Part shown: positions 2,464 to 44,800 of the stretch, piece after piece
Position numbering within the stretch: the stretch's first letter is position 1
Layout of the letters: each line of letters opens with the position of its first letter
DNA from: Podarcis liolepis
Taxonomy: Eukaryota
Strand: one strand, 5' to 3'
Assembly (NCBI GenBank): GCA_965112155.1
Contig: OZ218098.1
DNA: 64,000 nucleotides
Position numbers and translations under genes: made by a program
The notes under the pieces: generated by a model
Told to the model about the DNA's origin: nothing
Seen by the model: only the letters and a program-made list of their open reading frames with translations
The model's database searches: none

Positions 2464-2532
2464 ATGGCTTCACTATTCCAGCACCTGCGGGTGCTGCTGT
2501 GGAAGAACTGGCTGGGCGTCAAACGGCAAAAA
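2464..2532 (+). CDS. ABCA12: ABCA12 coding exon 1 (69 nt), MASLFQHLRVLLWKNWLGVKRQK
   Basis: ATG at 2464; ABCA N-terminal LLWKNW motif; donor AAA|gtaagt; phase 0. Confidence 0.95.
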
Positions 2533-11239: not shown

Positions 11240-14200
11240 AAAAAAAAAGAGGCCCAAGAGTTGATTTGCCATGTGCTGGTGTAAATTAAATAAGAATTAC
11301 TTGCAGGCTGTGTAGCAATATAAGAAAATATGGGATTTTCACTGATCCTCTAACTGTTCAATTAGAATAATATCTCAAAAACTATTATAGAATTAGTTTA
11401 AAATTTACCAGTGCTTTCAAGGATTGAGACTCCCTGGGGAACCTTCTATGGAAGCCTGGCTTATTTGAGCCTAGAATGAACTTAGTTCACTTATTTATTT
11501 TATTATTTGATTTATATACTGCCTTTCATCACAAGCTCTTGGGGCGGTTCACAGAATAAAATACAAGGTAGTAAAGGTAAAGGTACCCCTGCCCGTACGG
11601 GCCAGTCGTGTCCAAATCTAGGGTTGTGAGCCCATCTCACTTAAGAGGCCGGGGGCCAGCGCTGTCCGGAGACACTTCCGGGTCACGTGGCCAGCGTGAC
11701 GAAGCTGCTCTGGTGAGCCAGCACCAGCACAGCACACGGAAATGCCGTTTACCTTCCCGCTATAAAGCGGTCCCTATTTATCTACTTGCACTTAGGGGTG
11801 CTTTCGAACTGCTAGGTGGGCAGGAGCTGGGACCGAAAGACAGGAGCTCACCCCGCCATGGGGATTCGAACCGCTGACCATGCGATCGGCAAGCCCTAGG
11901 CACTGAGGTTTTACCCACAGCGCCACCCGCGTCCCAAAATACAAGGTACAGTGGTGCCTCGCAAGACAAAAATAATTCGTTCTGCGAGTCTTTTCGTCTT
12001 GCGATGTTTTTCGTCTTGTGAAGCACGGTCCGTCGCAACTGCGCCTCTTCAAGCGGCTTTAAGAAAAAAGCGCAAGATGTTTTCATCTTGCAAAGCAAGC
12101 CCATAGGGAAATTCGTCTAGCGAAGCAACGCAAAACCGAAAAACCCTTTCGTCTAGCGAGTTTTTCGTCTTGCGAGGCATTCGTCTTGCGGGGCACCACT
12201 GTAAAACACAAGTAAATAGTTAAAAGAAAACCAACAAACAATAACCCCCCTCCTACAAGCACATTTAAAGGGCTGTAGAATATTAATCAGGCTGGTTGAA
12301 AAGGAACTAGGAATTTAGGAAGTTATGTTTTGCTGAGTCAGACCACCCAAGAGGCCTCAGGCAGCAGGATCCACAGGAGCAGTAGCTCCAGCCAGTGGTG
12401 GAGGAAGGGGGGCGGTGGAGGTGGTCTGCCCCGGGTGTCATCCCCGAGGGGGTTGACATCGCCACCCCCGCCCCCTGGGACTCCCACCGCTCACCATGGG
12501 TGGCATCCCCCAGGACGCTCGCCGCAGGCACTGCCCTGGCTGCTGAAGCAGCTAGCTGCTCCTCTGGCTCCAGCTGCCAAGAAATGCAGTGCCTTCTGCT
12601 GCTACTGCTGTCACTGCTGCATGCTCCTTGGAGACCCATCTGCCGCCTCCTTGGCAGCGCCTCCCCACCCTGCTTGCCACCTCTGCAGTGGCCTCTTGGC
12701 AAATAGGAGGCTCAGCTTGTCTCCCCCACTCCTATGGGGCTGCTGTCTGGGGTCTCCTGGGCTCTGCACCTGCCCAGTGTGACTCAGAACAGGCCCCTTT
12801 CAGCCCTGCAACAGCCTTTGACTCCACTTCAACCATCGGTGAAGGTTGCTTCGATTCCCCCCTTGTTCCTGATGTAGATCTTCACTCACCCCTTCTTCCC
12901 TTGTAGTGGTTTTGTGGTTCGTCTCAGGTGCCCAAATTGCTTGGGCTGGCCGTGAGACTATCGGTCCAATTGGTCTAGCCAAGTATGATCTACACTGGTG
13001 AGCAGTAGCCACTCAATGTTTCAGACAGAACTTTTTCTTTCAACCTGGAGATGCTTTCTACCTGAACCTGGGATTTCTCTCTGCAAGGCAGATTCCCCAC
13101 CACTGAAGGCTAGGACAAGTATGACCACAAACAAATAAGGTTTCTAGTGATTATTGGTGAATGCATTGGATTCTGGTAGAAAGAGAATTGGAAAGCTGAT
13201 ATTTTATATATGTGTGTGAGTTGCTTTGTTGAACAGATTTTCCTTTTATGCTACTGACATACACTTTTAACCATTTAACAAGGATTCACGCTGCCCCTGC
13301 TTCTCTCTCACAGGTTTGGTCACTCACATTAATTGCATGGCCTGTGTTTTTATTCATCCTTATGGCCATCATACGAACCAGATTTCCTCCAGAAGCCCAG
13401 CCAAACTGTGAGTAACTTGACCCCCCTTTAAAGATGGATATGGGTTTTGTATTGTTGTCGAAAAGGCTCAGGTCCTTTATGTTTAGAAGCTTTAGCTATT
13501 TGAAGATAACTATCATTTCTCCTCTCAATCTCCTCTTTTCTGGGCTAAACGTACCCTGGGAAGAAAAAGCTTTTAATAGTTTCTTAGATACCATTGTCCC
13601 AGAAGGGTGTTTTCTGTCTACTGCAACCTCTCCCCAATCTGCCTATTGTCAGCAAAGTCAGGTGCCCAATTTTGTGTGATGGGGACTTTATGCACTGATT
13701 CTAAGCATAATTTGGGAAGTGTAGAGGTGCCACACCCTCTCCTTTTGGATGACACCGGCATGTGTGTGAAATCAAAAACGCTTAAGAGATAATCTGAATT
13801 TACTATATTCAAGGTCAGGTTGGTATAACCTGTTTGCTGGAATGTTTCTTAATACTTTCTTCAGCATCTCTCTTTCAATTTACGCTCACATAGAGCAAGC
13901 TATTTATTTTGCAGGCTCACCTAGAATTGTAGGAACAAGGAACAGTGCCTGTAGCAGCATGAAACTAGTTGAACAAGATCCTTCTCCGGTTAGCTAATAG
14001 TTTCTGGTCTCTGCATCATATTAAAAAAAAGAAAAGAATTAGCAATTGTGCAATTCAATATTGAAGTAAAACACTGTACCAGAATATTTTTCTAACTAAT
14101 CCTACACTTAATCCAAACTGACATTGTAGAACTTAGTCTCAATGGTCACTGCTAGACACTTCCAGCATTAGCTGCAGTTGGGGAGTTTAACAGGGACAAA

Positions 14201-17200: not shown

Positions 17201-20200
17201 ATAGTGCAGCACTAGCCCAGAAACGTCAAGGGCAGAAGTAAGAGATTTTAGCTATGTTAAAAATAGAAAAGAAGACATGCAGTTTTTGTCCCAGTGAAAT
17301 ATGTCACTTTGAAAATAATTTCCTCAGAACTTATACTTATGTAAAACTCAAGCTGGTGATGTAATTTCTATTTTCACTGTGGGAAAATATCATTCCAGAT
17401 ACTTTATAAGAAGGAGAGTGGCACAGAGCTGCCTCAACACTTTGCGTCTCCAGGGGCAAAGTACCCCCACCTCCATTCTCCTCTTCCTCCCCACTGTCAC
17501 CAATACTTTCCCCTCTCCTTTCTCCCTGATCTGCTGTTGTGCCAGGGCTATCCATGCCACACTGAGGAAGGGGTCCTATCAGTGTACCACCGTCATTTTG
17601 CTGCGATGGTGGCAAAGCTTGTAAAGTTAAATTTTAACAGGATTTGCCTCTGTCATGGCTAAGGGGCAATGGCACAGGTAATCTCCAGGGTCTCCTCACC
17701 TACACTGCCTGACCCCCAGGAAGGGGCACAGATCCAAAATATGTTACCCACAGGAAGGGGCTAACCCTCAGGAAGGGGCACAGATGGGGGCACAATCCAC
17801 TACCTATCCTGAACCTCTACCTGAGTTGTCCATCAAGGTTTAAGCCCTGCGGTTCCAAAGTCTAATTTATGTACGTTATTTTCAGGATATGTTCATTCAG
17901 AACTTTAAAGCACTCTGCCACTGGAATAATCAGTTCCCACCTATTATGTGCCAATCCCTGCCCTCCCCCACCCCCAACTCTGTATCGAGGAAACTCAAAT
18001 TCACTGTCAAATTTAAAATTGTCCTAGTTTATGTACTTTGTGTTGCAGAATTATTCTCAGTTTTTGAGTTTTTAGTCAACAAGTGTACTATAGTGGCGTG
18101 TAGTATGGGGTATGTCAGGACTTGCAAGGCAGCATGTGCAGGAGAACTTATGAGAGTGAGATACGAATGGTATTGGACTCTGGACAGTTTACAGTGAAAG
18201 TTAAAACCATATCATATGGAGAAAAAATACATCAGTTCAATGTATAGAACAGAATAAAACAGCAGCTGAATAAAACCAAAGTAAAACCCGAAATGGTGAA
18301 TAAAAACACCAACACGTTATTCTGGCACTTAGGGTAGAAAACCTCACAAGTACCTCACTCTGGTTATAAAATAAATAAAAGAACTATCACTTTGCTACCC
18401 TTTCATGATACCCATATAACCAGCTGCCCGAGGTGGTTGCCTCACTCTGCCTAATGATAGAGCCAGCTCTGAATGCTATGCAATGCAATACTGGGACCTT
18501 GCTCTCTACAAAGAAGTAAATCTGTGCCCAGGCTATACCAGCTTACAGATCTATAGATAGAAAACTACCATGTATTTAAAGAGATACAATAAAGAATAAA
18601 TTTCCAAGAAGGGTTAGAAATATGAACAGCAGTCAAAAACTCTACTGCAAATATATACAATTAATTGGGTGGCATAAAAAGGATATGCAGCAAAAAAAAG
18701 AAGAAAAAGAACAATGGAGAGGTGGAGCTGGAAGCCCTTTAAAAGAAATAAGAGAATGAAAATGTAAGATGTGTATACTAAGTTTGTGAACATGCATAAA
18801 TAAAAAATTAAAAAGGAAGAAGACTAGTTTTCTGTGTCCACCTGCATTCTAAAATAGTACAGCCTAGAGGGAGATTTACTGTCTCAGTGAGCGCTAGACC
18901 CTAAGCCTCATTGTGAAGATAAGGGTTTGGGAAACATGCTTAAAGATTATGATTTTCAGGACCAAGAACAGGATGTGTTTGAAGGCTCAGTTCCATTCAT
19001 TTTATTTTCAACCTCAGTTGACAGCCAGTTTTAATTTCTTAGATCCGTCATACTTTACTAGATGCTAGAAAACAGATCCTGAAATTATTAGAAGTACCAG
19101 AATGGAGGAGCGAAGGAGCGTTTTGGAGGGATTGTTTCTCTCAGCCTCTAAGCAAGAGCACCTGACTTTCTGGGGTGCATGAGAAACTTTGCGCAGGAGG
19201 AAGCCCTGGGTGTGAGGTGCAGGGGGAGGGAAATGTAGGTCTCTGCTTCTTCCACAGCATCCCAGAGATCAGTGAAGAAATTTGAGTATGACTTGGAATT
19301 GATCTGGGTGGTGTGGGCAGAAAGGCAGTTCAAGCGCTGTGGTGGCAAGGAGGGGAAGGCGTTTCTGGTGCTTGGAAAGAAAGATCTAATCAGGAACATA
19401 CTCCCTTGCTTAATGTTGGGAAGATGAAGATTCCTTTAAAAATCAAAATCAATTCTAATAATGATAAAAAACACCCTTTAAAAACAAACATTTGTGATCA
19501 ATAACTGTGAAGAAAACCATAGCTAGTGTTACCTAAGTGTGTTACCCTCCTAAAGAAGAGTTGTCCAGCCTAATGCTCTCAGGTGTTTGGATTATACTTC
19601 CCATTATTCCTGACCATTGTCCATGCTGAGCAGAGCTAATATAAATAGCCTGGAGGACACTAGCTAGAGGAAGGCTATCCCCAAACATGGCGTTTTCAGT
19701 CTTAGGCAGAACCCAGAACATATTGTCTGTTGCCATGTTTTCCATTGCTAGTGACCAAGGTGAGTTTCACCCTCACAGTACCAATGTGGGATATCTCAGC
19801 TCCGCATTTGTAAAGTAACAGGTTGTCTGAGGGATTCTGTGTCTGCTTGAATAGCGGCATAGGGGTCATTGACTCGGGTGCAAAATTGTTAGGTGCAAAA
19901 CTTCAACACTGGGTGCTGCCTTAATACAGGCGTGTGCTTCTGTCACCGGGTCCGTTGAAAACAGCTTCTCCATGAGAACCAGGAAGTGTCAGCTTCGTTC
20001 TGGAGCTGATAGAGGCTGGGAATGAGGCCAGAGAAAGAGAGAGAAGAACCCTGGCATGTGGGAAGGAGGAGGGCCAGCCTAGCCACCTGACACAGAACAG
20101 AGAGCAGGCAGCATCCCTGAGCATAGTGGACAAGGAAAGGGGCGCCAGAACAGAGATACACAAACTAACAGTTTCAGCTCAGAAACAGAGGGAGAGAGGC

Positions 20201-32800: not shown

Positions 32801-35800
32801 TTTCACTACTTGTATATTTAATATACAAGTCATTAAGAAGCTGCAAACAATAGTGAATTCCTGCTGCAAGTGCATGCAGTGGTCAGCTATATGTTCCCAC
32901 CCTTGAACTGAGTTCAAAAGAACCTCTTATTGGAATCATCAGATTAGGTTTTTAAAATTTGATTTTCCGTAAGAGTCTGCTTTCTCCTGTTGTGCCTTCA
33001 TCATGTTTTATAAGGGCATCACCCAGCAACTCTTATTCGTTCTGATGCTCTAGGGCTAGTAAGGTACAGTGGTGCCTCGCAAGACGAAAAGAATCCGTTC
33101 TGTGATTTTCTTCGTCTAGTGGTTTTTTCGTCTTGCAAAGCAAGCCCATTGACGGATTAGCGGATTAGTGCTATTAGCGGCTTTTAGCGGCTTATCGGCT
33201 GATCGGATCAGCTGATAAGTGGCTTAGCGGCTTAGAAAAAGGGGGGGAAGGGAAAAAAACCCGCAGGAACTCGCAAGACATTGTCGTCTTGCGAAGCAAG
33301 CCCATAGGAGATTCGTTTTGCGAAGCACCTCCAAAACGGAAAACTCTTTTGTCTAGCGAGTTTTCCGTCTTGCGAGGCATTCGTCTTGCGGGGCACCACT
33401 GTACAAGCCTTTGGCATACTTCAATACTATCTGGGAGCCCAAGCCTGTACCACAGCTTCCCCTTCCTATCTGGGAGGTTTTGCAACTGGTAGGGCAAGAT
33501 CACAAGATCTCCTAGTCATGGAACAGGTTCATGCAGGTCTGTAGTTCTCGACTCACAGCAGCATCAGCAAATGAAGCAAACCTCCACACCCCGTATATAG
33601 CTGGGCTTTCTTGAGGTTTAGTATAGAAACATTTAAATTTTCAACCAGGCCAAATTAATATTTTTACTACTAGTAGTAGTATGGTTTGAAACATGTGTTT
33701 CAAAAAGTACAATACTTTTACAGAACAGTAATAAAAAAACCAAACCCAGAAAGGTGTGCCCCTGAGCTGAGGAATGTGTATTCAGTTCATCACATGTCTT
33801 TACTTTCAGTACGGGATGAGAACAAAGGGGTTAAGCCAAAAGCTACTGAGGAAAGGGTTTTGTAAAGAGTGACTTGAAGTAAGTATGGAAGTGGGTCAGC
33901 ATTACATAGGTGATCTGGGAGTAAGTTCTGGGCACGAGGAACAGCAATCAGGAATCTTCTCTCCTGCCTAGTTCTAAAAAGATATCTAGAATGACAAGCG
34001 CTGAAGTCAAAGAAGTGACTAGTAGCCAGGATGCCTGCCCAAGTATGGTATCACACACACATACTTTCCCCACAGAGCTGCAGTTTGAAGTTGTTTCCCT
34101 TCCTCCGTTGTGAGCGAGCTATGATTAAAAGAGAACTGGCGTCCTGTGAACTGCTCTATCTATCTATCTATTCCTTTTAAAAGTTTCATTTTTGTTTTAA
34201 GTTGCAGCAAGATTCTCAGTACCAGGTGGCTTTTGTCAAGGAAACAGTTTCGTTCTTATCGCTCATCTCCCAAGTGCAGAATGAAACTTCTCTGTGGCAC
34301 ATCCTCCTGATGGCCCCAGATATCACTCAAGGTGTCAGTGCTATGAAGGATATGATTGCTGCCCTTCAGAACACAAGCAGGTAAAAGAAAAGGCAAGCTA
34401 TACACCAAAAACATAATAGCTATGCCTGGTATTTCGCTGACAGTGATGAAGTAGTAGCTTCCACTGACAGTTATAAAGGGAGGTGTTATGAAAGGAGAGC
34501 ATGAGATTTCAGTGGCTCAGCAGTAGACTGGTTTATTTGAAGGTCTAGGCTGTGTACATGGACTTCATCTGTAGTGCTTGTTTGATTAAAGTGATTTTAT
34601 TGTTCTTGGTGGTACAGAAATCTTTGTAAGGAAATAAAAATAACTAGTGTTCAAATGGGGCAGTGATGATACAACAACATCTAATACAACATTGTATTAT
34701 CAATTGTTATATCAAAGGAGCTAATAGAATAACATAGTGAGAGAAATGAATGTTTATAACAGAAAATGCAAAAAATTAAAGCAAAACAAACAAACAAAGG
34801 GGCAGTGATGATTGCCACATAGAAGTGTCTTAGGGAGGGAAACCCTGACTATTCGGAATTCATAGACTTCATGGCATTCATTTTCATCCTCCCCTTTATC
34901 TCCATTTCTTACTACTTTGGGAGTAGGCCGTCTGCTTGCCATTTTGTTTTCCTAAAATGCCCTAGACATTGTGCAATTTCTTCCCTTACACTACCTAGCT
35001 ATTTACAGGAAGCAAAGCTGTTTGATGCTCTATAATATGCTCATTCTGTGTTACTATTGCTTTATTTCCCCTGTTTACAAAGAATTATTACGGCTGTGGA
35101 AAAGGATTCTCCACTAGTTGCAAGTGACAATGGACTGCAAGCCATACAGAACATGATTAGTGGTCTGCTGCATGCCTTGAACTGTTCAGAGCAAGGTGAG
35201 GCCCCTTGCTTATCTCTTTATCAGGCATCTAAGTAATATTGATGGACAAGTTTAAGCTCTTGCAAATCCATACTTGTTGCATCATACAAAAAATGTTTTT
35301 TTGCTTCAGTTTATAACAGACACTAAGATGCACAAAATAATGAAATGCTTACTGCCAACAGAAAATAGAAGCATTTTTTTCATAAGTTATTCAAGGCCTT
35401 GTTGATGTGTTTATTCTGATAAACGGAAAAGATTAATAGTCATTAGAGATACTGGGATGGTTTGTATGTAATGTTTATGGCTTAAGAGAGCCAGGAAAAG
35501 GGTCTCTTCTCATCTCCTCCTGATACATGCCATCTTTGGCACATTATTTAACCCAGAGTTCATTTTTTTCAGAAACAGGTAACTCTGGTTTCATGTCAGT
35601 TTACTAACCAGGATCTTTAAACGTGGTTTATTCTTGGATCTTGTTAAGATCCTAGTTAGTAAGCCATCATCACCCCAGTGTTCCCCATATGACACACTGT
35701 TTGAAGCAAACTGGGACAGAAGTGCTGAATATAGTTTTGGGATGGGGAGAAATTTGTTTCAGTTTTCATGTCCTAATTGATCAAATTTGCACTTTCCAAA

Positions 35801-38800
35801 ACACAGCCATACTTCAAAATTCACATTTATTGTGGATTTATCTTGTTTATTTTTATTTTGTAGATAATAGCAGCTCAGCAATGAATGACATTTGTCAGCT
35901 CTCTCTTTACTGGAAAAACAACCCAACTTTAATGACTCAAATGAAAGACATTGTGAGGTGAGAGTAATAAATTATTTATGGGGTGAAAGTTAGGTTTTTG
36001 CTAATGTGAAATTTTATTCTGGGGGGGCAGTGGGAAGGGGGCTTTGCAAAAACTGCATAGCTTTCACTGGATCATATGAACATTTAACCAGCAACTGCTG
36101 TATTGTTGAGGCAAAGCTGGTCGATTAAACTCATAACACACTGTGGATTTTAGGGGGAAATGTATCCCTGAGAGTTAGTATTTGTGTAACATTAACATAT
36201 GCATGATTCCTCAGAAGTAAGTCACCTTGGCCGAGATTTAACTAACCAGCTCCATAAATGGAAGCCTTGAACAAGGGTTTCTGTTTGTGCGCTAGGGCTT
36301 TCCTTCCTCTCCTCTTTCGGCAGGCCCTGTCCCTCAAAACTGGCTTTCGGGTGTATGTGTGAGAATTCCCAGAATAGTACACAAAGGGAGGAGAGGGGCT
36401 TGTTCCATCTAGCAAACTGAAATGCTTGTGTAGAGGGAACAATTGAAAGAGCTTGAGGTTGAATTCTACCCACAGTGTTTAGCGGGCTTACTCCCAGCTA
36501 ACGGTGTATAGGATTTCAGCCACAGTGACAGAATCCATGACACATTGGTTGTTCTCAGATGTAGCACAAAACTATGGCTTAAGGTTTATATGCACAAGTA
36601 TTGGGCACATGCACTTCCTTCCTCTCTTCCTTCAGTGCAGCCGTGAGGTGGGAATCAACCCTTCGCTTCTGCTTTTTATGAATGATGATTTGTTGTTCTA
36701 TGCAAGCCTAGAAATGCTGCACCATTCAGAAACTGATGGGCGTGGACTTCATTCTTCAAGCAGAAGCAACATATTGTTTACTGAATTTTAAAGAATTACA
36801 CATTTGCCATGGCATAAAGACTGACACGTTTATTCTGCCATGTTCTAGCTTGAGGGGGCATTATTGTCTTTTTGTTATTATGTTATGTATTTTGTGGGGG
36901 GTTTGTGTGTTTTATGTTGTAAACTGCCCTGTGATCTTCGGATGAAGGGAGATATATAAACTGGATAAATAAATCAAATCATTTGAATTTGTATTTCTGT
37001 ATTTTTGTTCTCATTTCAGAAAAATATTACCTCCAGATTTTGCTGGTGAAGACTTCAAAACGCGTAATCTCTCAAAGGATTTAGAAACCATTAAGAAGTC
37101 TCTACATCTTTTTGAAGTTTTACCAGAGAAATTTAGCATTGCTGAACTGAACAACCTGTTCAAGCAATATGAGAATAACAGTGGAGTGAACTTGACTGAT
37201 ATCCTTCAGTGGCAAATGGAGGCTGGCAGAGACAGTAAATTAAGAGGTGCACTTAATAGGAGAGAAATCAACCAAATCAACAACTTCACATCTCTCCTGC
37301 TTCAAAATGATTTTAATAGGCTGCACTTGCTTGATATAATGGCTCACTTGAAAGAAAGTAAAAGTGTTCCCAAGTTTAGAAACATTTGGAATCAAACATT
37401 TTTAAATAAGACTAATATTATGGTCACAAAGATATGGCAAACCATTAAAACGATAAATTCTCACAAATTATCTTATATGCCTGAAAACCTTAGAAGGTAC
37501 TTAGCATCAGTCCAAGATGTGCCATCATTGTTTTCAGATTTTCTGTTTAAACCTACGACTATTTACAACTTTCCTGAGAAGTTCTTGACACTCCAGAAAA
37601 TCTTAAATATTGTAGCAAATGTTCAGAAAAGTCATAATTACTTATTGCTATCCTTCATTATTGACAAGATGCAGGACATTCAAAATTTCATTGGTGAATC
37701 TCATTGGAATGAATTCAATCATTATTGGCGTATTACAGAAAAACTGAGGTCTGCAAAATGGAGTGATACAGATATCGTTGCCTATGGGCAGGTTTTGGAC
37801 ATATTGCACAACAATCTTCATGTTCACCACAATGGCTCTGGCCTTCCTTTGAAAAAGGAGCTTGGGCAGCTGACCAAATTTGTGAACCATTTAATGAAAG
37901 AATACAGTGAGGAGAACATCAGTGGGGCAAATGTCTCAATGTTTTTAGATGCTACTCTGAAAACTCTAGATGTACTAGAAGACTTGGAGGAAAGGTACAT
38001 CCATGAATTAATTCCTGTTAATCCACTAAAGGATGCCAGCAATGAAACTGTCCAGAGATTGTTCCAAATATTCAAGGAAGGGGTAGATATACTTTCTGAT
38101 CCTAGGCTGACAGAATCATCTAGTATTAAAAAATTGGATACCCTCTTCAGTTTTTCACGCATGTTACTTTTGCAGAAGTTGTATAGGACTTCAGCACAGC
38201 ATGATTCTTCAGGAGAAGCAAAAGTACAGGATCTTTTGTATTTAACATTGACCCCTTTTCTAAGGGAAGACAATCGGGTTAATGAAAGACTGCAGAACTG
38301 TACTGTCAAGGATGTTCATCACATTGTTCTTGAAGTGCTGTTGAATAATGCCACCCTACTGGACACCTTAAGAGGAAGCAGCTGCCATTTCCTCTTTACC
38401 GCCACAGACTTGGAAAACCAAACAGCCCACCATCATACATTTACTGAGCGGTTTCAGCTTGTGATAAGAAATTTAAAATTGATGCCAACTTTTCAAAATC
38501 TCCACAAAGACAAATGGAAATACTTTTCAGATGAATTTCAGTGCTTCATCAACTCATTACAAGTTTCGTCAGAGTTTCTCTCCAAACTGAACTATTTCCA
38601 TAGCTACAAGAATCCCTGGATACAAAAGATGCATAGACGTCTAACAGCCATCTCTAATGAATTCCACCAAAGTAATCTGACCTGCCAAGCACCATGGCTT
38701 GGGCTTATGGACATTATAAATGGACCTTCTGCTCTGCACATTTTAAGCCCTTTTATTGTGAATGAAACAGAACCTCGTGCACAAAATTTATCTGGCAGTG

Positions 38801-41800
38801 TACCACAAGCCCTTGCATCTTTTATTTTGTTACAAAATGAGCCCTATAAGAATGCCGCTGTATCAAAGATATTAAAAGTGAGCAAAAATGATGCAAGTCA
38901 ATCAAAATGGAAGAACTTATCAAAGGTATTGAGTGAAGTTGCAAATATGTTGAGCTCCAATCAGAATGTGACAAATGCAAACCAGTATGTTCGACTCTTG
39001 GACATGACCAGGAAAGCTCTACTTCTCGTTGGCGCAGGACTGGCGCCTAATAAAACAGAAGCTCATCTGCCCCTTGAGACCTTAAGTTGGCAGATGAAAG
39101 TTTCCTATTTAGAAGACATGCTTGCTTCATTAAAATTATTCCTAAGTGAAACCTCTGACATAGATTTCAAAGCTCATTTAGAAATACTTTTTAATAATTT
39201 GTCTACACCTGTTGATGTTCTTGCTCAAAGCCTTTTTTATATGAACCCTCACTGGAAAGAAACCAAGAAGGCATCAAACTTAAGTAGAATGACTTGGAAT
39301 CTGCTGATTTTAAATGAGACTAATTTTAAATTAGCAACAATATGGGAAGATATCAAAAAGGTGATCTCTATGGCAAATCCGCTCTTTCCTGAGGACGTGA
39401 AGCAGGACTTTGATGCAACACAGGAAGCCCCATTGCAGTTTTCAGATCTTCTGCTTAGATCTAAAAGCAGAAAAAACATTTTGGAGTACTTCTTAGCACT
39501 TTTGAATAAGTATCGTTTTACAGCAAGCATGAGCGTGAGCCACAATGCCCCCTTAATGGCGTACCTTTCAGGAATAATGCAAAAAATCCAAAACACCACA
39601 AATTTATACACACAGGATAATGGTTCTGATACTCTTTTCAGTGCAGAACTGGAGGAACTGACTAGACACTTATCCCACATTACACAGAAGTTTACTGAGG
39701 AAGACTCACAAAGCAGCAACATCTCAGAAGTAATCGATGTGGTCCTCAGGAATCTGTTGTTACAGAAAACTTTTGAACACCAATTTAACACCAGCCAATT
39801 AGAAGCAACCCCTCAGTTGGTCTATGATAGCAATAAAGCCCTCCAAAGGGTATATGACATACTGAGGCAAGGGAGAATAATGCTTTCTGACAGCAGGCTG
39901 GAAGAAGAAACTGCTAAAGAAAAAATTGCTGCACTGTATGGTTTCTCACACTTTATCTTTCAAAAAGAATTTAATGAGTCTTTGTTAGGGCTTAGTACTT
40001 TAGCGGAAGCAAAGATAATAGATGTCTTGCATTTATCTCTGAGTCTTTTCTTAGATATTGGGAACCATGGAGCTGGAAGGCCACATAACTGCAGTGTCCA
40101 AGATGTAATTCACGTAATACTTCAGATGTTGTTTAAGAATGCCACTATCCCTGAGTTCTTGAAACAAAGTCATTGCGAACTACCTTTTACTTCCAGGGAC
40201 TTTGAAAACAGAACAATGCCCAATCAAACATTTACTGAATTGTTCCAGGACTCAATAAGCAACTTAAAGCAGACTCCAGAATTAGCAAGACTTTACAAAA
40301 ACAATAGTGAATTTTTGTCAAGTGCATTGCTATGCATCATCAAATCACTACAGTTTTCTTCAAGCCTGCTTTCAAAAATGGACGCCCTCTTCCATTTTAA
40401 ACATCCATGGATAAGGGACATTCATAAAACCCTAGCAATAATCTCTAACAAGCTGCCCCCAAATGATTCAACTTGCCCAATCCCTGTTCTTAGTGATACA
40501 AATAATACAGTCAACTATGATCCTTTGAATCTTGTCCCGCTTTTCTTTGCCAGTGAAGCAGAATTTTATTCACAAAATCTCACAGACAGCTTAGCTGATG
40601 GGAATAATTTGTCAGTGTTTTTCAAGCTATTGCAGGATAGCCTTCCTTCAAATGCTGCCATAAATGAAGTGCTTCAGATTGCCAGAGAAGCTGTCCACAG
40701 CCAATCTGGATGGAAGACTTTTTCTCATATCTGGAACGTGTTTCTCAAGTGGAACATTACAGAAGTTGAGTATGTGAAGCCTGGCTTGAAACTAGTGGAA
40801 AGAGTTCTAGTCGACAATGAAGTACCTGATGCCAGTGTTTTTAAAAATGTTACATTTTTGAATTTACTGAAGGAGCTAAAAGCAGATGTGAATCTACATT
40901 TTCTTCAAGACAGAACCAATCTGGAATATCAGCTTGACCATGTTGCACCCCCTTCTGTCATGACCACTGAAATGCTTCTAAACAGAATACTGCTTCAGAA
41001 TGAACTGGTGCAAACACTGCCTCCAAGCAGTTTGATTGGACGGTAAGTGGTCAGTTTCATAATTGTAACAATCTGTTGTTGAACTCAGCAGTTCAAAGAT
41101 TATTCAGCCTTGTTCTCAAATAGAGTTGGGTGGCCCCTAAATATCAGAGAGCTGCCAAATAGGGAGCTCGCTCTTCCACTCAGGCCCTGCTTGCGAGCTC
41201 CCCATAGGCATCCAACTGGCCACTTTGAGAACAGAATGTTGGTCTAGGTCAGCCATAGGCAAACTCGGCCCTCCAGATGTTTTGGGACTACAACTCCCAT
41301 CATCCCTAGCTAACAGGACAGGTGGTCAGGGATGATGGGAATTGTAGTCGCAAAACATCTGGAGGGCCGAGTTTGCCTATGCCTGGTCTAGGTGGGCCTC
41401 GGATTTCTCTTATGCCATTTTAGGTGAAGGCTGGCCCACCCATGAGGCAAGGTCAGGTGGCAAATCTGAGCCCAAGTTGCACACCACTTGCCACCATTGC
41501 ACCATCACTGACTCCTCCTGTGTGGGGGTGCACCACTGCTGCTGCAAGCATGCCCTGCTGCCTCATCTGCCATGGGTGGCACCCATGGAGGTGGTCGTGA
41601 CAAAGGTGACAGGTTTTGCCTCAAGCAGCAAAAGATCCTGGCCCGGACCAGATACATGCTTTAGTATTTAAGCATGGGATAAACAGTGGCGTAGCGTGGG
41701 GGGTGCAGGGGGGCCCCTCCGCACCGGGCGCAACATCTGGGGGTTAGGGTTAGGGGGCGCAAATCCACGGGTTAGGGGGCGCAAATTACTTGCCTTGCCC

Positions 41801-44800
41801 CGGGTGCTGACAACCCACGCTACGCCACTGGGGATAAAAACAATGTCTTGAATCCAAGGACCACACAACTCTCCCTTTTTGCTGAACTGCAGAAAAAATG
41901 ACTGCAAGCTTATGGGTTCCTTCAGAGCAGCCTTTCTGGAGGCCTGGGGGCAATTGCACCAGAAGGAGAAAATCGGCAACCTCCCCAGCACAAGCAGAAC
42001 TACATTTCCCTCATACTGGAGATTGAAACTGTAGTGTTTGACAAAAATAAGAGGGAGGGGCAGAGAAAGGGGGGTGCGGGCCGCCCTGGGTGTCACCACT
42101 GAGGGAGGTGACAAAATGCCGGGTGGCACTCACCGGGGGGCCTGCAGCAGACCTAAGCCTTGTGTCTCTCCTGGGAGTGACATGGCGGCTTGGGCTTACA
42201 CAGGCTTTGCACTGCCCAAACGATCTGCCCACTGCCTCCCCCCAGCTGTAGGGTGGCAGAGTGGGAGGAGGCAGGCAGACTCTGGAGCCCCGCAGTGCGC
42301 CCCACCCCATGGGTGGCTCGTCCCACCCTCGCCCTGCCCCCATGGGTGGCTCGTCCCGCCCTTGCCCTGCCCCAATGGCCGGCTTGCTTTGCCCCAGACG
42401 CCTGAGCGGCTTCCTCCTCCGCAGGACGGGGGGGGGGTAAATGAATGCACAGCATCTTTTTCTAAAAAAGAGGCTGCGAGATCCAGGATAATAGCAGTTA
42501 CCAAGACAGGAAAAATATGTAAACTAGAGGAATCTGTGTATGTGTCAGTGATTGAAATAATTGTTGCAGCCCAATCTTAAGCTTGCATATTAAGACACAA
42601 GTTTGACTGTTTTTTTTTTACTGTGGGACTTCCTTCTCAGTAAGCAAGTTCATAATTGTTGCCTGATGCCCTAATTGTGTACTTAAAGCTGCAATCCTAA
42701 ACACACTTACTAGAGGGAAAGTCCTATTGAATTGAATGAGGCTTATACATGAGCCAACTTGCTTTGGGTTGCATTTGGTTTGGATCAATGGGTTAGCTTG
42801 TCTCCTGCTCCCAGCCTCTTAGCCTAAGACTTGCACTTGGACAGGCCAGGGAGGATCATACTGAAGCTGGTGAGATTTCTTAAATCTTTGAAGTTTAGAC
42901 AGACTGTAAGTAACGTAATAAGTGAAGTGTCATACAGAGAAATCTGTTTAATTATGGCTACTATCCCAGATGGTGTATCTCTAAATTTGTTTTACTCAAG
43001 AAAGTTGAACTCTGCTGTCTCATTTGGAAACTAGGAAAGCTACTATGTGCAGTGTTGTTTAAAAAATTTACCACCCTCATGTAAAATTCAGCTGAGCTGT
43101 CTGGCTTAAGCTAATTTGGTCTCACCGAATCAAATATAAGTGGGCTACAGATACATTTTTTTAAAGGATTTCTATTTCACACCATTATGTAATGTTTGCT
43201 GCGGCATACTTAAGAAGTCGGAGCATTCCTTTCTTGTTCTGTTTTTTTGTTCTAGGTTTCTGTTTTCGGAATTTGAAAATGTCTTCTTACACATGTCCCC
43301 CAATAATGTCTTCAGATCGTACTTGATTTGTGTATTGAATGTCTCTGAAAGGCTGGAAAGTGAATTTTCAGGTAATGTATATGTTGATAGTGGCATACAA
43401 TTTACAGTGATACCTCGGGTTACATATGCTTCAGATTACATACGCTTCAGGTTACACATGCTTCAGGTTACAGACTCCGCTAACCCAGAAATATTACCTT
43501 GGGTTAAGAACTTTTATTCAGGATGAGAACAGAAATCGCACGATGGCCGCACAGCAGCAGCAGGAGTCCCCATTAGCTAAAGTGGTGCTTCAGGTTAAGA
43601 ACAGTTTCAGGTTAAGTACAGACCTCCAGAATGAATTAAGTACTTAACTTGAGGTACCACTGTACTCGTTTTTGAAACTTCCCTTTATGGATGGCTGAAC
43701 ACTTTTATGTATGAACGTGCCATGGCTGGCTGTGTACACCCCATACATTCAAAGCTGATTATCCTCTGTAAGGATTCTGGAAACTGTAGTTTACTCCTAT
43801 AGAACTAGAATTCCCAGGACCTTTAATAAGCTACAGTTTCCAGGATTCTTGGGGGGGGGAGGAATGTGCTTTAAATGTATGGTGTGTAAGCAGCCTTGGA
43901 CTAGCTGTTATCCATAAGATGAACTCAATATATGTTCATTCATGTATGCATTTATGTATATGTGCAGAGAGGGAGGGAGGGGAGTGATAGGATTTCCATT
44001 TTTGTTTTTGCAAAAGCCGCAGTCTTGATTTTGGGGGTGTCTGCTCAATATCACCCTCCCCTATCTGCATTTCTACATGCAGGGAAATGGTGGTGGTGAA
44101 GATGATGATAGTTGGATCTTCATAGTCATCTTGGTAGCCTATAGGGCAAAAAAAGTACTAAGAATGCTTGAAATAAATAGACAGACAAGTAATTGTTTGG
44201 TTTTTCTGTACAGGAAATGCTGACCTTCCTCCAGGCTTCGCACAGCTGAAAAAGGTTATTCTCACTCCCCGTGATACTGACAAGAAAGATCTATCAGTTA
44301 CAGAGATCCTGATGCGAAGAGTGAGTAGGCTTATGATGCTGGCTGATTGCGTGGTATGATTGCGTGGGCTTGTAACAACTGTTATTAAGGCCTAGGTCTG
44401 CCCAACGTGAAAGTGTATTAAAAACCAGAAGACTACATTCCCTAGAGAAAAGCAGCTTTGGGAGGGGAAACCTAGCACAGAAATGGAGCAGGAATGCATC
44501 TCACCGTTCCTCACCTGCTGCTTCTCTTTTCCAAACCTCTCTTCCCCCCATTGCAAACATACATATAAAATGCAAATGGAGAAACTTTTCCAGCCCCCTT
44601 TATTTCTACACCCTCACACAGCCCTCTTTATCCTCCTTCCAGTCAAGCAGAAGGCATTATCTGGGTTCAAGGACATACTCAGGCAACACAACAAAAACAA
44701 AGACCACGCAAGGAGGGTGCAAAGCAGGGCTTCTGAGCCATGTTGTCTGTGGAGTGGAGGTGTAGTTGGTGAAGGGGCGTGGCATGAGGACAGTAGAGAG

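Follow-up and report, generated by a model that had tools for sequence, protein, structure and literature searches.

The window studied here, 64,000 nucleotides (nt) of contig OZ218098.1 from the lizard Podarcis liolepis (assembly GCA_965112155.1; one strand), carries the first part of a gene that sequence comparison identifies as the orthologue of ABCA12, a glucosylceramide transporter, and within that gene a single coding exon of 4 kb. With a probability of about 0.88, we consider this giant exon to be a real exon of ABCA12 that encodes a luminal, modular and ancestral region, and the 2595-residue mammalian protein to be a derived short form. The exon is already known, both from RefSeq entries for the nearest relatives and from models of more than 100 other non-mammalian vertebrates. 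The gene-structure finding itself therefore adds nothing, and the novelty of our analysis is limited to characterizing the unnamed module of which the exon product is composed.

A transcribed giant exon in ABCA12

The giant exon and its immediate surroundings are arranged as follows:

35864–35957, plus strand: exon directly 5′ of the giant exon; donor GTGAG/gtgag in the sequence, joint 35957/37020 in RNA
35958–37019, plus strand: GT..AG intron, spliced out of transcripts (RNA joint; raw RNA depth of 0 at 36100–36899)
37020–41042, plus strand: giant exon; 4023 nt, phase 1-1, 1341 codons, stop-free
43256–43371, plus strand: exon directly 3′ of the giant exon; acceptor ttctag/G, in phase; Podarcis raffonei residues from about 1665

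The reading frame opened at position 37021 comprises 1340 stop-free codons, and the remaining two frames are full of stops. Base 37020 closes a codon of the preceding exon, and bases 41041–41042 open a codon that is completed at 43256; with a length of 4023 nt, or 3 × 1341, the exon is symmetric and in phase with both neighbors. It is bounded by an acceptor with a polypyrimidine tract followed by cag/A (tttttgttctcatttcag/A) and by the donor CG/gtaagt. Calculated from the base composition of the exon itself, the probability of an equally long stop-free run is ~8e-41. A preliminary description of this DNA had reported the same 4-kb stop-free frame, with its acceptor, its donor and its fit in phase to both neighbors.

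To examine expression, we aligned two sets of Logan contigs and two runs of raw stranded RNA-seq reads to positions 35900–41899; the RNA comes from a lizard whose exon is 98.3–98.5% identical to that of the window. Two transcript contigs (4845 and 7149 nt) cover 37018–41044 without interruption. The 4845-nt contig contains a joint, reported as 'skips 1062, GT..AG (cut +2)', that corresponds to 35957/37020 and is also crossed by 2 raw RNA-seq reads of one run, which confirms the junction that the preliminary description had proposed for an RNA check. The 7149-nt contig reaches 1147 nt farther upstream, into sequence other than intron, and beyond 41044 both contigs enter sequence other than the downstream intron. 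Raw stranded reads cover the exon on a single strand at a depth of 1–13, falling to 0 in the upstream intron (36100–36899). On the basis of the contigs, the exact joint and the stranded coverage, we conclude that the giant exon is transcribed, spliced at 35957/37020 and ended by the donor at 41042.

The same data bear on the possibility that the exon is a regulated cassette, whose tissue-specific skipping would give a mammal-like short ABCA12 beside the long form. Such an arrangement would fit a length divisible by three with equal phase at both ends, and shorter public isoforms do exist, such as Pseudonaja X2, from which 689 residues of the region are missing. However, every aligned transcript contig and RNA run carries the giant exon whole, including both long contigs and all RNA-seq coverage; no joint internal to 37020–41042 was found in any of the four runs; and what the shorter public models are missing is a single module period within the exon rather than the entire exon. 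We consider regulated skipping improbable.

The exons of the window are colinear by tblastn with the 3915-residue ABCA12 of P. raffonei (21 segments over residues 1–2264, most at 85–100% identity) and follow the same order against gecko and cobra ABCA12 models. These matches bear out the earlier naming of the gene, and the length of the closest public model agrees with the protein of ~3900 residues that had been predicted. The giant exon corresponds to residues 331–1667 of the P. raffonei protein, at 95.4% amino-acid identity. Two canonical first exons precede it in the window:

2464–2529, plus strand: ABCA12 coding exon 1 (MASLFQHLRVLLWKNWLGVKRQ), N-terminus; 91% identical to gecko ABCA12 residues 1–22
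13314–13409, plus strand: coding exon 2, first transmembrane helix (VWSLTLIAWPVFLFILMAII); gecko residues 24–55

All window sequence 3′ of the exon for the first transmembrane helix (TM1) falls on the luminal or extracellular side, and the window ends inside extracellular domain 1, at about residue 2264 of the P. raffonei protein. That protein contains the domains ABC_tran, ABC2_membrane_3 and R1_ABCA1, which are encoded beyond the window end. The ABCA1 structure aligns only from P. raffonei residue 2084, and that of ABCA7 from residue 2013; otherwise, the solved structures of ABCA1, ABCA4 and ABCA7 give only a short, non-significant N-terminal alignment with the lizard-type protein. The multi-kilobase single exon is positioned between TM1 and the ABCA1-alignable core of extracellular domain 1, in keeping with the earlier claim that it adds 1341 residues between TM1 and the conserved portion of this domain. 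Because these residues follow the first transmembrane helix and precede the core alignable with ABCA1, ABCA4 and ABCA7, they are luminal, within vesicles of the lamellar-body type, or extracellular.

The P. raffonei RefSeq model lacks the two canonical first exons, which encode the N-terminus and TM1 and are both intact in the window, and starts instead at an exon matching window positions 19687–19779 (77% identity). This start may represent an alternative first exon or a weak gene model.

In the intron 3′ of the giant exon, depth rises from ~70–90 over the exon to thousands to tens of thousands at 41100–41500 and 41700–41899, with many loose ends and back-joints. The huge depth, loose ends and back-joints indicate high-copy, transcribed repeats at these positions. 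Transposons had been described in both flanking introns, and in the downstream one (41100–41900) high-copy repeats are indeed seen.

Repeated modules with conserved cysteines

The two halves of the exon product align to each other (31% identity, E 4e-74). We built a module profile from lizard, gecko and hummingbird modules and searched the exon with hmmsearch, which splits it into three. In full-length proteins, the first of these, module 0, reaches upstream into the small exons at 34199, 35081 and 35864, and its match to the profile hidden Markov model (HMM) spans P. raffonei residues 197–435 or 211–432. One copy of the module is therefore split by introns, and two are intron-free:

34199–34381, plus strand: small exon, start of the partial, intron-split module 0; P. 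raffonei residues 201–261
35081–35194, plus strand: small exon, middle of partial module 0; P. raffonei residues 261–298 (97% identity), within the module HMM match
37024–37335, plus strand: tail of partial module 0; exon residues 2–105, profile positions ~187–285, independent E value (iE) 1e-12
37345–39246, plus strand: module 1; exon residues 109–742, HMM score 986, cysteines 427, 455, 508 and 555
39250–41037, plus strand: module 2; exon residues 744–1339, cysteines 1024, 1052, 1105 and 1152, ~40-residue deletion relative to module 1

All lineages that we examined keep the frame open, and the alignment of the lizard product with those of birds, turtles and crocodile spans ~1300 residues, contains few gaps and shows 36–44% identity. 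The cysteines of module 1 are kept in 30/30, 30/30, 30/30 and 26/30 aligned sequences, and all four cysteines of module 2 in 26/26; seven of the eight are invariant, and the eighth is replaced in four frogs only. N-X-S/T sequons are enriched 2.6-fold (38 in the exon versus 14.7 ± 3.3 in shuffled sequences), an excess that recurs at 2.4–3-fold in gecko, anole, hummingbird, turtle and crocodile, and of the 34 sequons in the modules, 15 are conserved in 70% or more of the sequences. The remainder of the sequence changes rapidly. Between Podarcis and Zootoca, identity is 90.4% in the exon, 93.7% elsewhere in extracellular domain 1 and 98.3% in the core, which makes the giant exon the fastest-evolving part of the protein, at about 5–6 times the core rate; within sauropsids, the ABCA12 core of Podarcis is 78–98% identical to that of other species. 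This pattern reads as the signature of a glycosylated, disulfide-stabilized luminal domain with a freely changing surface, in which the four cysteines of each module would form two disulfides and the sequons would probably carry glycans.

We weighed against this the explanation that the exon is an exonized transposon or viral open reading frame (ORF), or a neutral pseudo-exon without a role at the protein level. Its rapid evolution and the lack of a Pfam domain could be read in that way, as could the 40 differences between the window and near-identical transcripts (29 non-synonymous and 11 synonymous), which give a ratio of non-synonymous to synonymous differences per site (pN/pS) of 0.68, not significantly below 1. 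A HMMER search with the first 1200 residues against 1.84 billion representative proteins, however, returned 10 matches, with no transposon or viral protein among them. They include gecko ABCA12 (3904 amino acids (aa)), a cobra protein (3797 aa) and axolotl ABCA12 (5222/5436 aa); the rest are a frog ABCA12-like protein, a monitor-lizard fragment, uncharacterized passerine fragments and unnamed Logan ORFs. Independent, transcript-derived ORFs of 1266–1348 aa are unbroken, squamates, birds, turtles and crocodile all retain the open frame, and amphibians have related modules that are likewise open; conserved cysteines, sequon enrichment and conserved length likewise speak against a neutral sequence. 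A transposon origin is rejected by the lack of any transposon or viral match together with the conserved frame, cysteines and sequons, and the explanation as a whole is very improbable. The absence of transposon similarity noted in the preliminary description thus holds as tested, against Pfam and the 1.84 billion proteins.

Searches for a known fold gave no assignment. A Pfam scan of the exon found nothing significant, only a sub-threshold methyltransferase match (E 0.17); an ESM Atlas look-alike search with module 1 returned no usable match; and the module alignment, used as a profile against PDB sequences, gave 0 matches at E ≤ 1. AlphaFold2 modeled module 1 with a mean predicted local distance difference test score (pLDDT) of 39 from 10 sequences and 51 from 33 sequences. 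In the latter model (predicted template modeling score (pTM) of 0.36), values of 60–85 are reached only at residues ~290–445, the cysteine-bearing stretch, which is the best-modeled part. This low-confidence model contains some 30 helices and zero strands, and the modules are accordingly predicted to be all alpha-helical. Module 1 matches from Foldseek against the PDB (best E 0.13) and from VIA-align wide (best Z 6.4, to helical hairpins) are non-specific, and no fold was assigned because such matches are generic for helical structures.

An ancestral luminal region and its absence from mammals

We surveyed public ABCA12 proteins in two ways. A region-restricted search with the gecko protein yielded models of about 3,800–3,980 aa in at least 18 squamates and a hummingbird, with exon identities of 95.4% in P. 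raffonei, 89% in Zootoca, 69% in Rhineura, about 50% in other squamates, 33% in hummingbird and 24% in axolotl. A second search, across vertebrates, used the conserved C-terminal part and was limited to proteins longer than ~2,990 aa; it gave at least 120 matches. Among the matches listed, ABCA12 lengths are about 3,980–3,990 aa for birds of many orders, ratites included, 3,884–3,950 aa for turtles, 3,963 aa for Crocodylus porosus, 2,989–7,546 aa for amphibians and 4,774–5,834 aa for sturgeon, paddlefish, gar and teleosts.

The exon product is contained, with the same two-module layout, in ABCA12 of P. raffonei (3915 aa), Zootoca vivipara (3940 aa) and Anolis carolinensis (3897 aa), and Calypte anna (3984 aa) and C. 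porosus (3963 aa) share both position and layout. Nothing of substance distinguishes the window from the lacertid RefSeq models; it is another lacertid's copy. The arrangement of one partial and two complete modules, at the same position, is common to squamates, birds, turtles and C. porosus. Amphibians (salamanders and frogs) have one to three detectable modules with other sequence between them; sturgeon and paddlefish match the first third of the module only (iE 1.7e-10 and 9e-8); and ABCA12 of gar and teleosts shows no match to the tetrapod module profile.

This distribution bears on whether the exon is a squamate- or lizard-specific gain, perhaps favored by the lipids of reptile skin. Strong single-sequence matches do come from squamates only, with identity falling to 33% in birds and 24% in axolotl, but birds, turtles and C. 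porosus share the layout and position, salamanders and frogs carry modules, and the first third of the module is matched in sturgeon and paddlefish. A squamate-specific gain was rejected on the shared bird, turtle and crocodile layout and the amphibian modules, and we regard it as scarcely credible. Because the layout is common to birds, turtles and crocodile, and modules occur in salamanders and frogs, the comparison argues that the giant-exon region dates back at least to the common ancestor of tetrapods, and that mammals either lost it or never expanded it. The preliminary description had left ancestry and lineage gain as alternatives: the former is upheld, and birds, turtles, crocodile and amphibians speak against the latter. 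Its caveat that longer ABCA12 models might already exist was correct, for RefSeq and many vertebrates. By contrast, its view of the exon as an extra does not hold, since the long form is the norm outside mammals, and neither does a specific link to reptile epidermal lipids, since the region is equally present in birds and larger in amphibians and fishes.

Mammalian ABCA12 is the orthologous gene with the same transporter core. The human protein has 2595 aa (PMC3209647), so the mammalian form is about 1,320 aa shorter than the P. raffonei protein (2595 versus 3915 aa), a difference equal to the size of the giant exon; from the lengths alone, we infer that the giant exon is the piece that mammals lack. 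Zebrafish Abca12 has been predicted to comprise 3634 aa, versus 2595 in human (Li et al. 2011, PMC3209647). The zebrafish protein is about 1,000 aa longer than the human one, and teleost insertions are unmatched by the tetrapod module profile. In the full-text literature, we found this remark on zebrafish length but no published account of the long ABCA12 of sauropsids or amphibians.

Several points weigh against reading the exon as a constitutive, ancestral coding region under selection. A one-sided binomial test does not place the pN/pS of 0.68 significantly below 1 (p = 0.18), and purifying selection is visible through long-term conservation only, not in the codon test. A ratio of non-synonymous to synonymous substitution rates (dN/dS) near 1 had been named beforehand as the mark of a non-functional exon; this narrow test does not exclude such a value, whereas long-term conservation speaks otherwise. 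The symmetry of the exon makes a skipped isoform possible, the skip junction 35957/43256 falls beyond the interval covered by the RNA comparison (35900–41899), and the RNA runs are of unspecified tissue. Finally, with a mean pLDDT of 51, the all-helical character of the modules is a mere prediction.

The modules may form a glycosylated helical arm that extends extracellular domain 1 in the lumen. Such an arm could tune the sorting or stability of the transporter, or the hand-over of lipid in secretory granules. It would stand outside the ATP-driven transport core, since mammals move glucosylceramide without such an arm and since the region evolves 5–6 times faster than the core. The textbook ABCA12 of 2595 aa is the mammalian short form, and elsewhere the protein carries 1,300 to 5,000 extra luminal residues, which consist of a fast-evolving, cysteine-marked module, predicted to be glycosylated and without a recognized fold. 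Human ABCA12 is the harlequin ichthyosis gene, and the region may be relevant to researchers of the skin barrier and of ABC transporters, with respect to lamellar-body biology and to what mammals may have given up or replaced.

The nearest functional hint comes by analogy from ABCA13, which we take to be a paralogue of ABCA12 and which resembles the lizard gene in having a multi-kilobase exon in its first extracellular region. Human ABCA13 comprises 5058 aa, and its extracellular region derives in part from a 4.8-kb exon (Prades et al. 2002, as cited in PMC7948424). The N-terminal region of mouse ABCA13 is needed for localization to intracellular vesicles and for cholesterol internalization, and the long N-terminal region has no recognized domain (PMC7948424). 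ABCA13 is not among the 10 HMMER matches or the 120 listed matches of the ABCA12 search, neither of which was aimed at it. We tentatively raise the possibility, which we think less probable than its converse, that the ~600-residue, four-cysteine, N-glycan-rich module represents an undescribed domain family that forms the luminal arm of non-mammalian ABCA12 and possibly also the 3,000-residue N-terminal block of ABCA13. If so, the module would have been present in the ancestor of ABCA12 and ABCA13, mammals would have deleted it from ABCA12 only, and lizard or bird ABCA12 would offer a tractable system for the role of the ABCA13 N-terminus, for example in vesicle targeting.

Variation among modules and public models

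A quick maximum-likelihood tree places the squamate copies of module 1 and of module 2 in two distinct clades with good support and groups the two hummingbird modules (Calypte anna residues 472–1105 and 1106–1742) with each other, with a support of 100. The latter pairing would mean that the bird lineage either duplicated the module independently or underwent gene conversion. The ~40-residue deletion of module 2 maps to window positions 39600–39720 (profile positions ~118–157) and is shared by lacertids, Rhineura and Tiliqua; module 1 retains the residues missing from the lacertid module 2, as does module 2 of geckos, iguanians and snakes.

Public models vary widely in length. The longest include those of Bombina (7546 aa), Pelobates (6891/6762 aa), Rana (6662 aa) and gar (5834 aa). 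In ABCA12 of amphibians and fishes, extracellular domain 1 is longer by 2,500–5,000 residues at this same point, and the added residues match the tetrapod module in part only; some anurans have models of ~3,000 aa with a single module.

Shorter models of about 3,170–3,350 aa lack one internal block of 632–689 residues, as comparisons of a short with a long form show for the Pseudonaja pair, chicken versus quail, and zebra finch versus Anomalospiza. The missing block amounts to one module period, from the middle of module 1 to the middle of module 2. In Pyrgilauda, it is found as an 'uncharacterized protein' on an unplaced contig of 1.9 kb, which suggests that the short models reflect assembly gaps. 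The short Pseudonaja model is annotated as an isoform from the same assembly.

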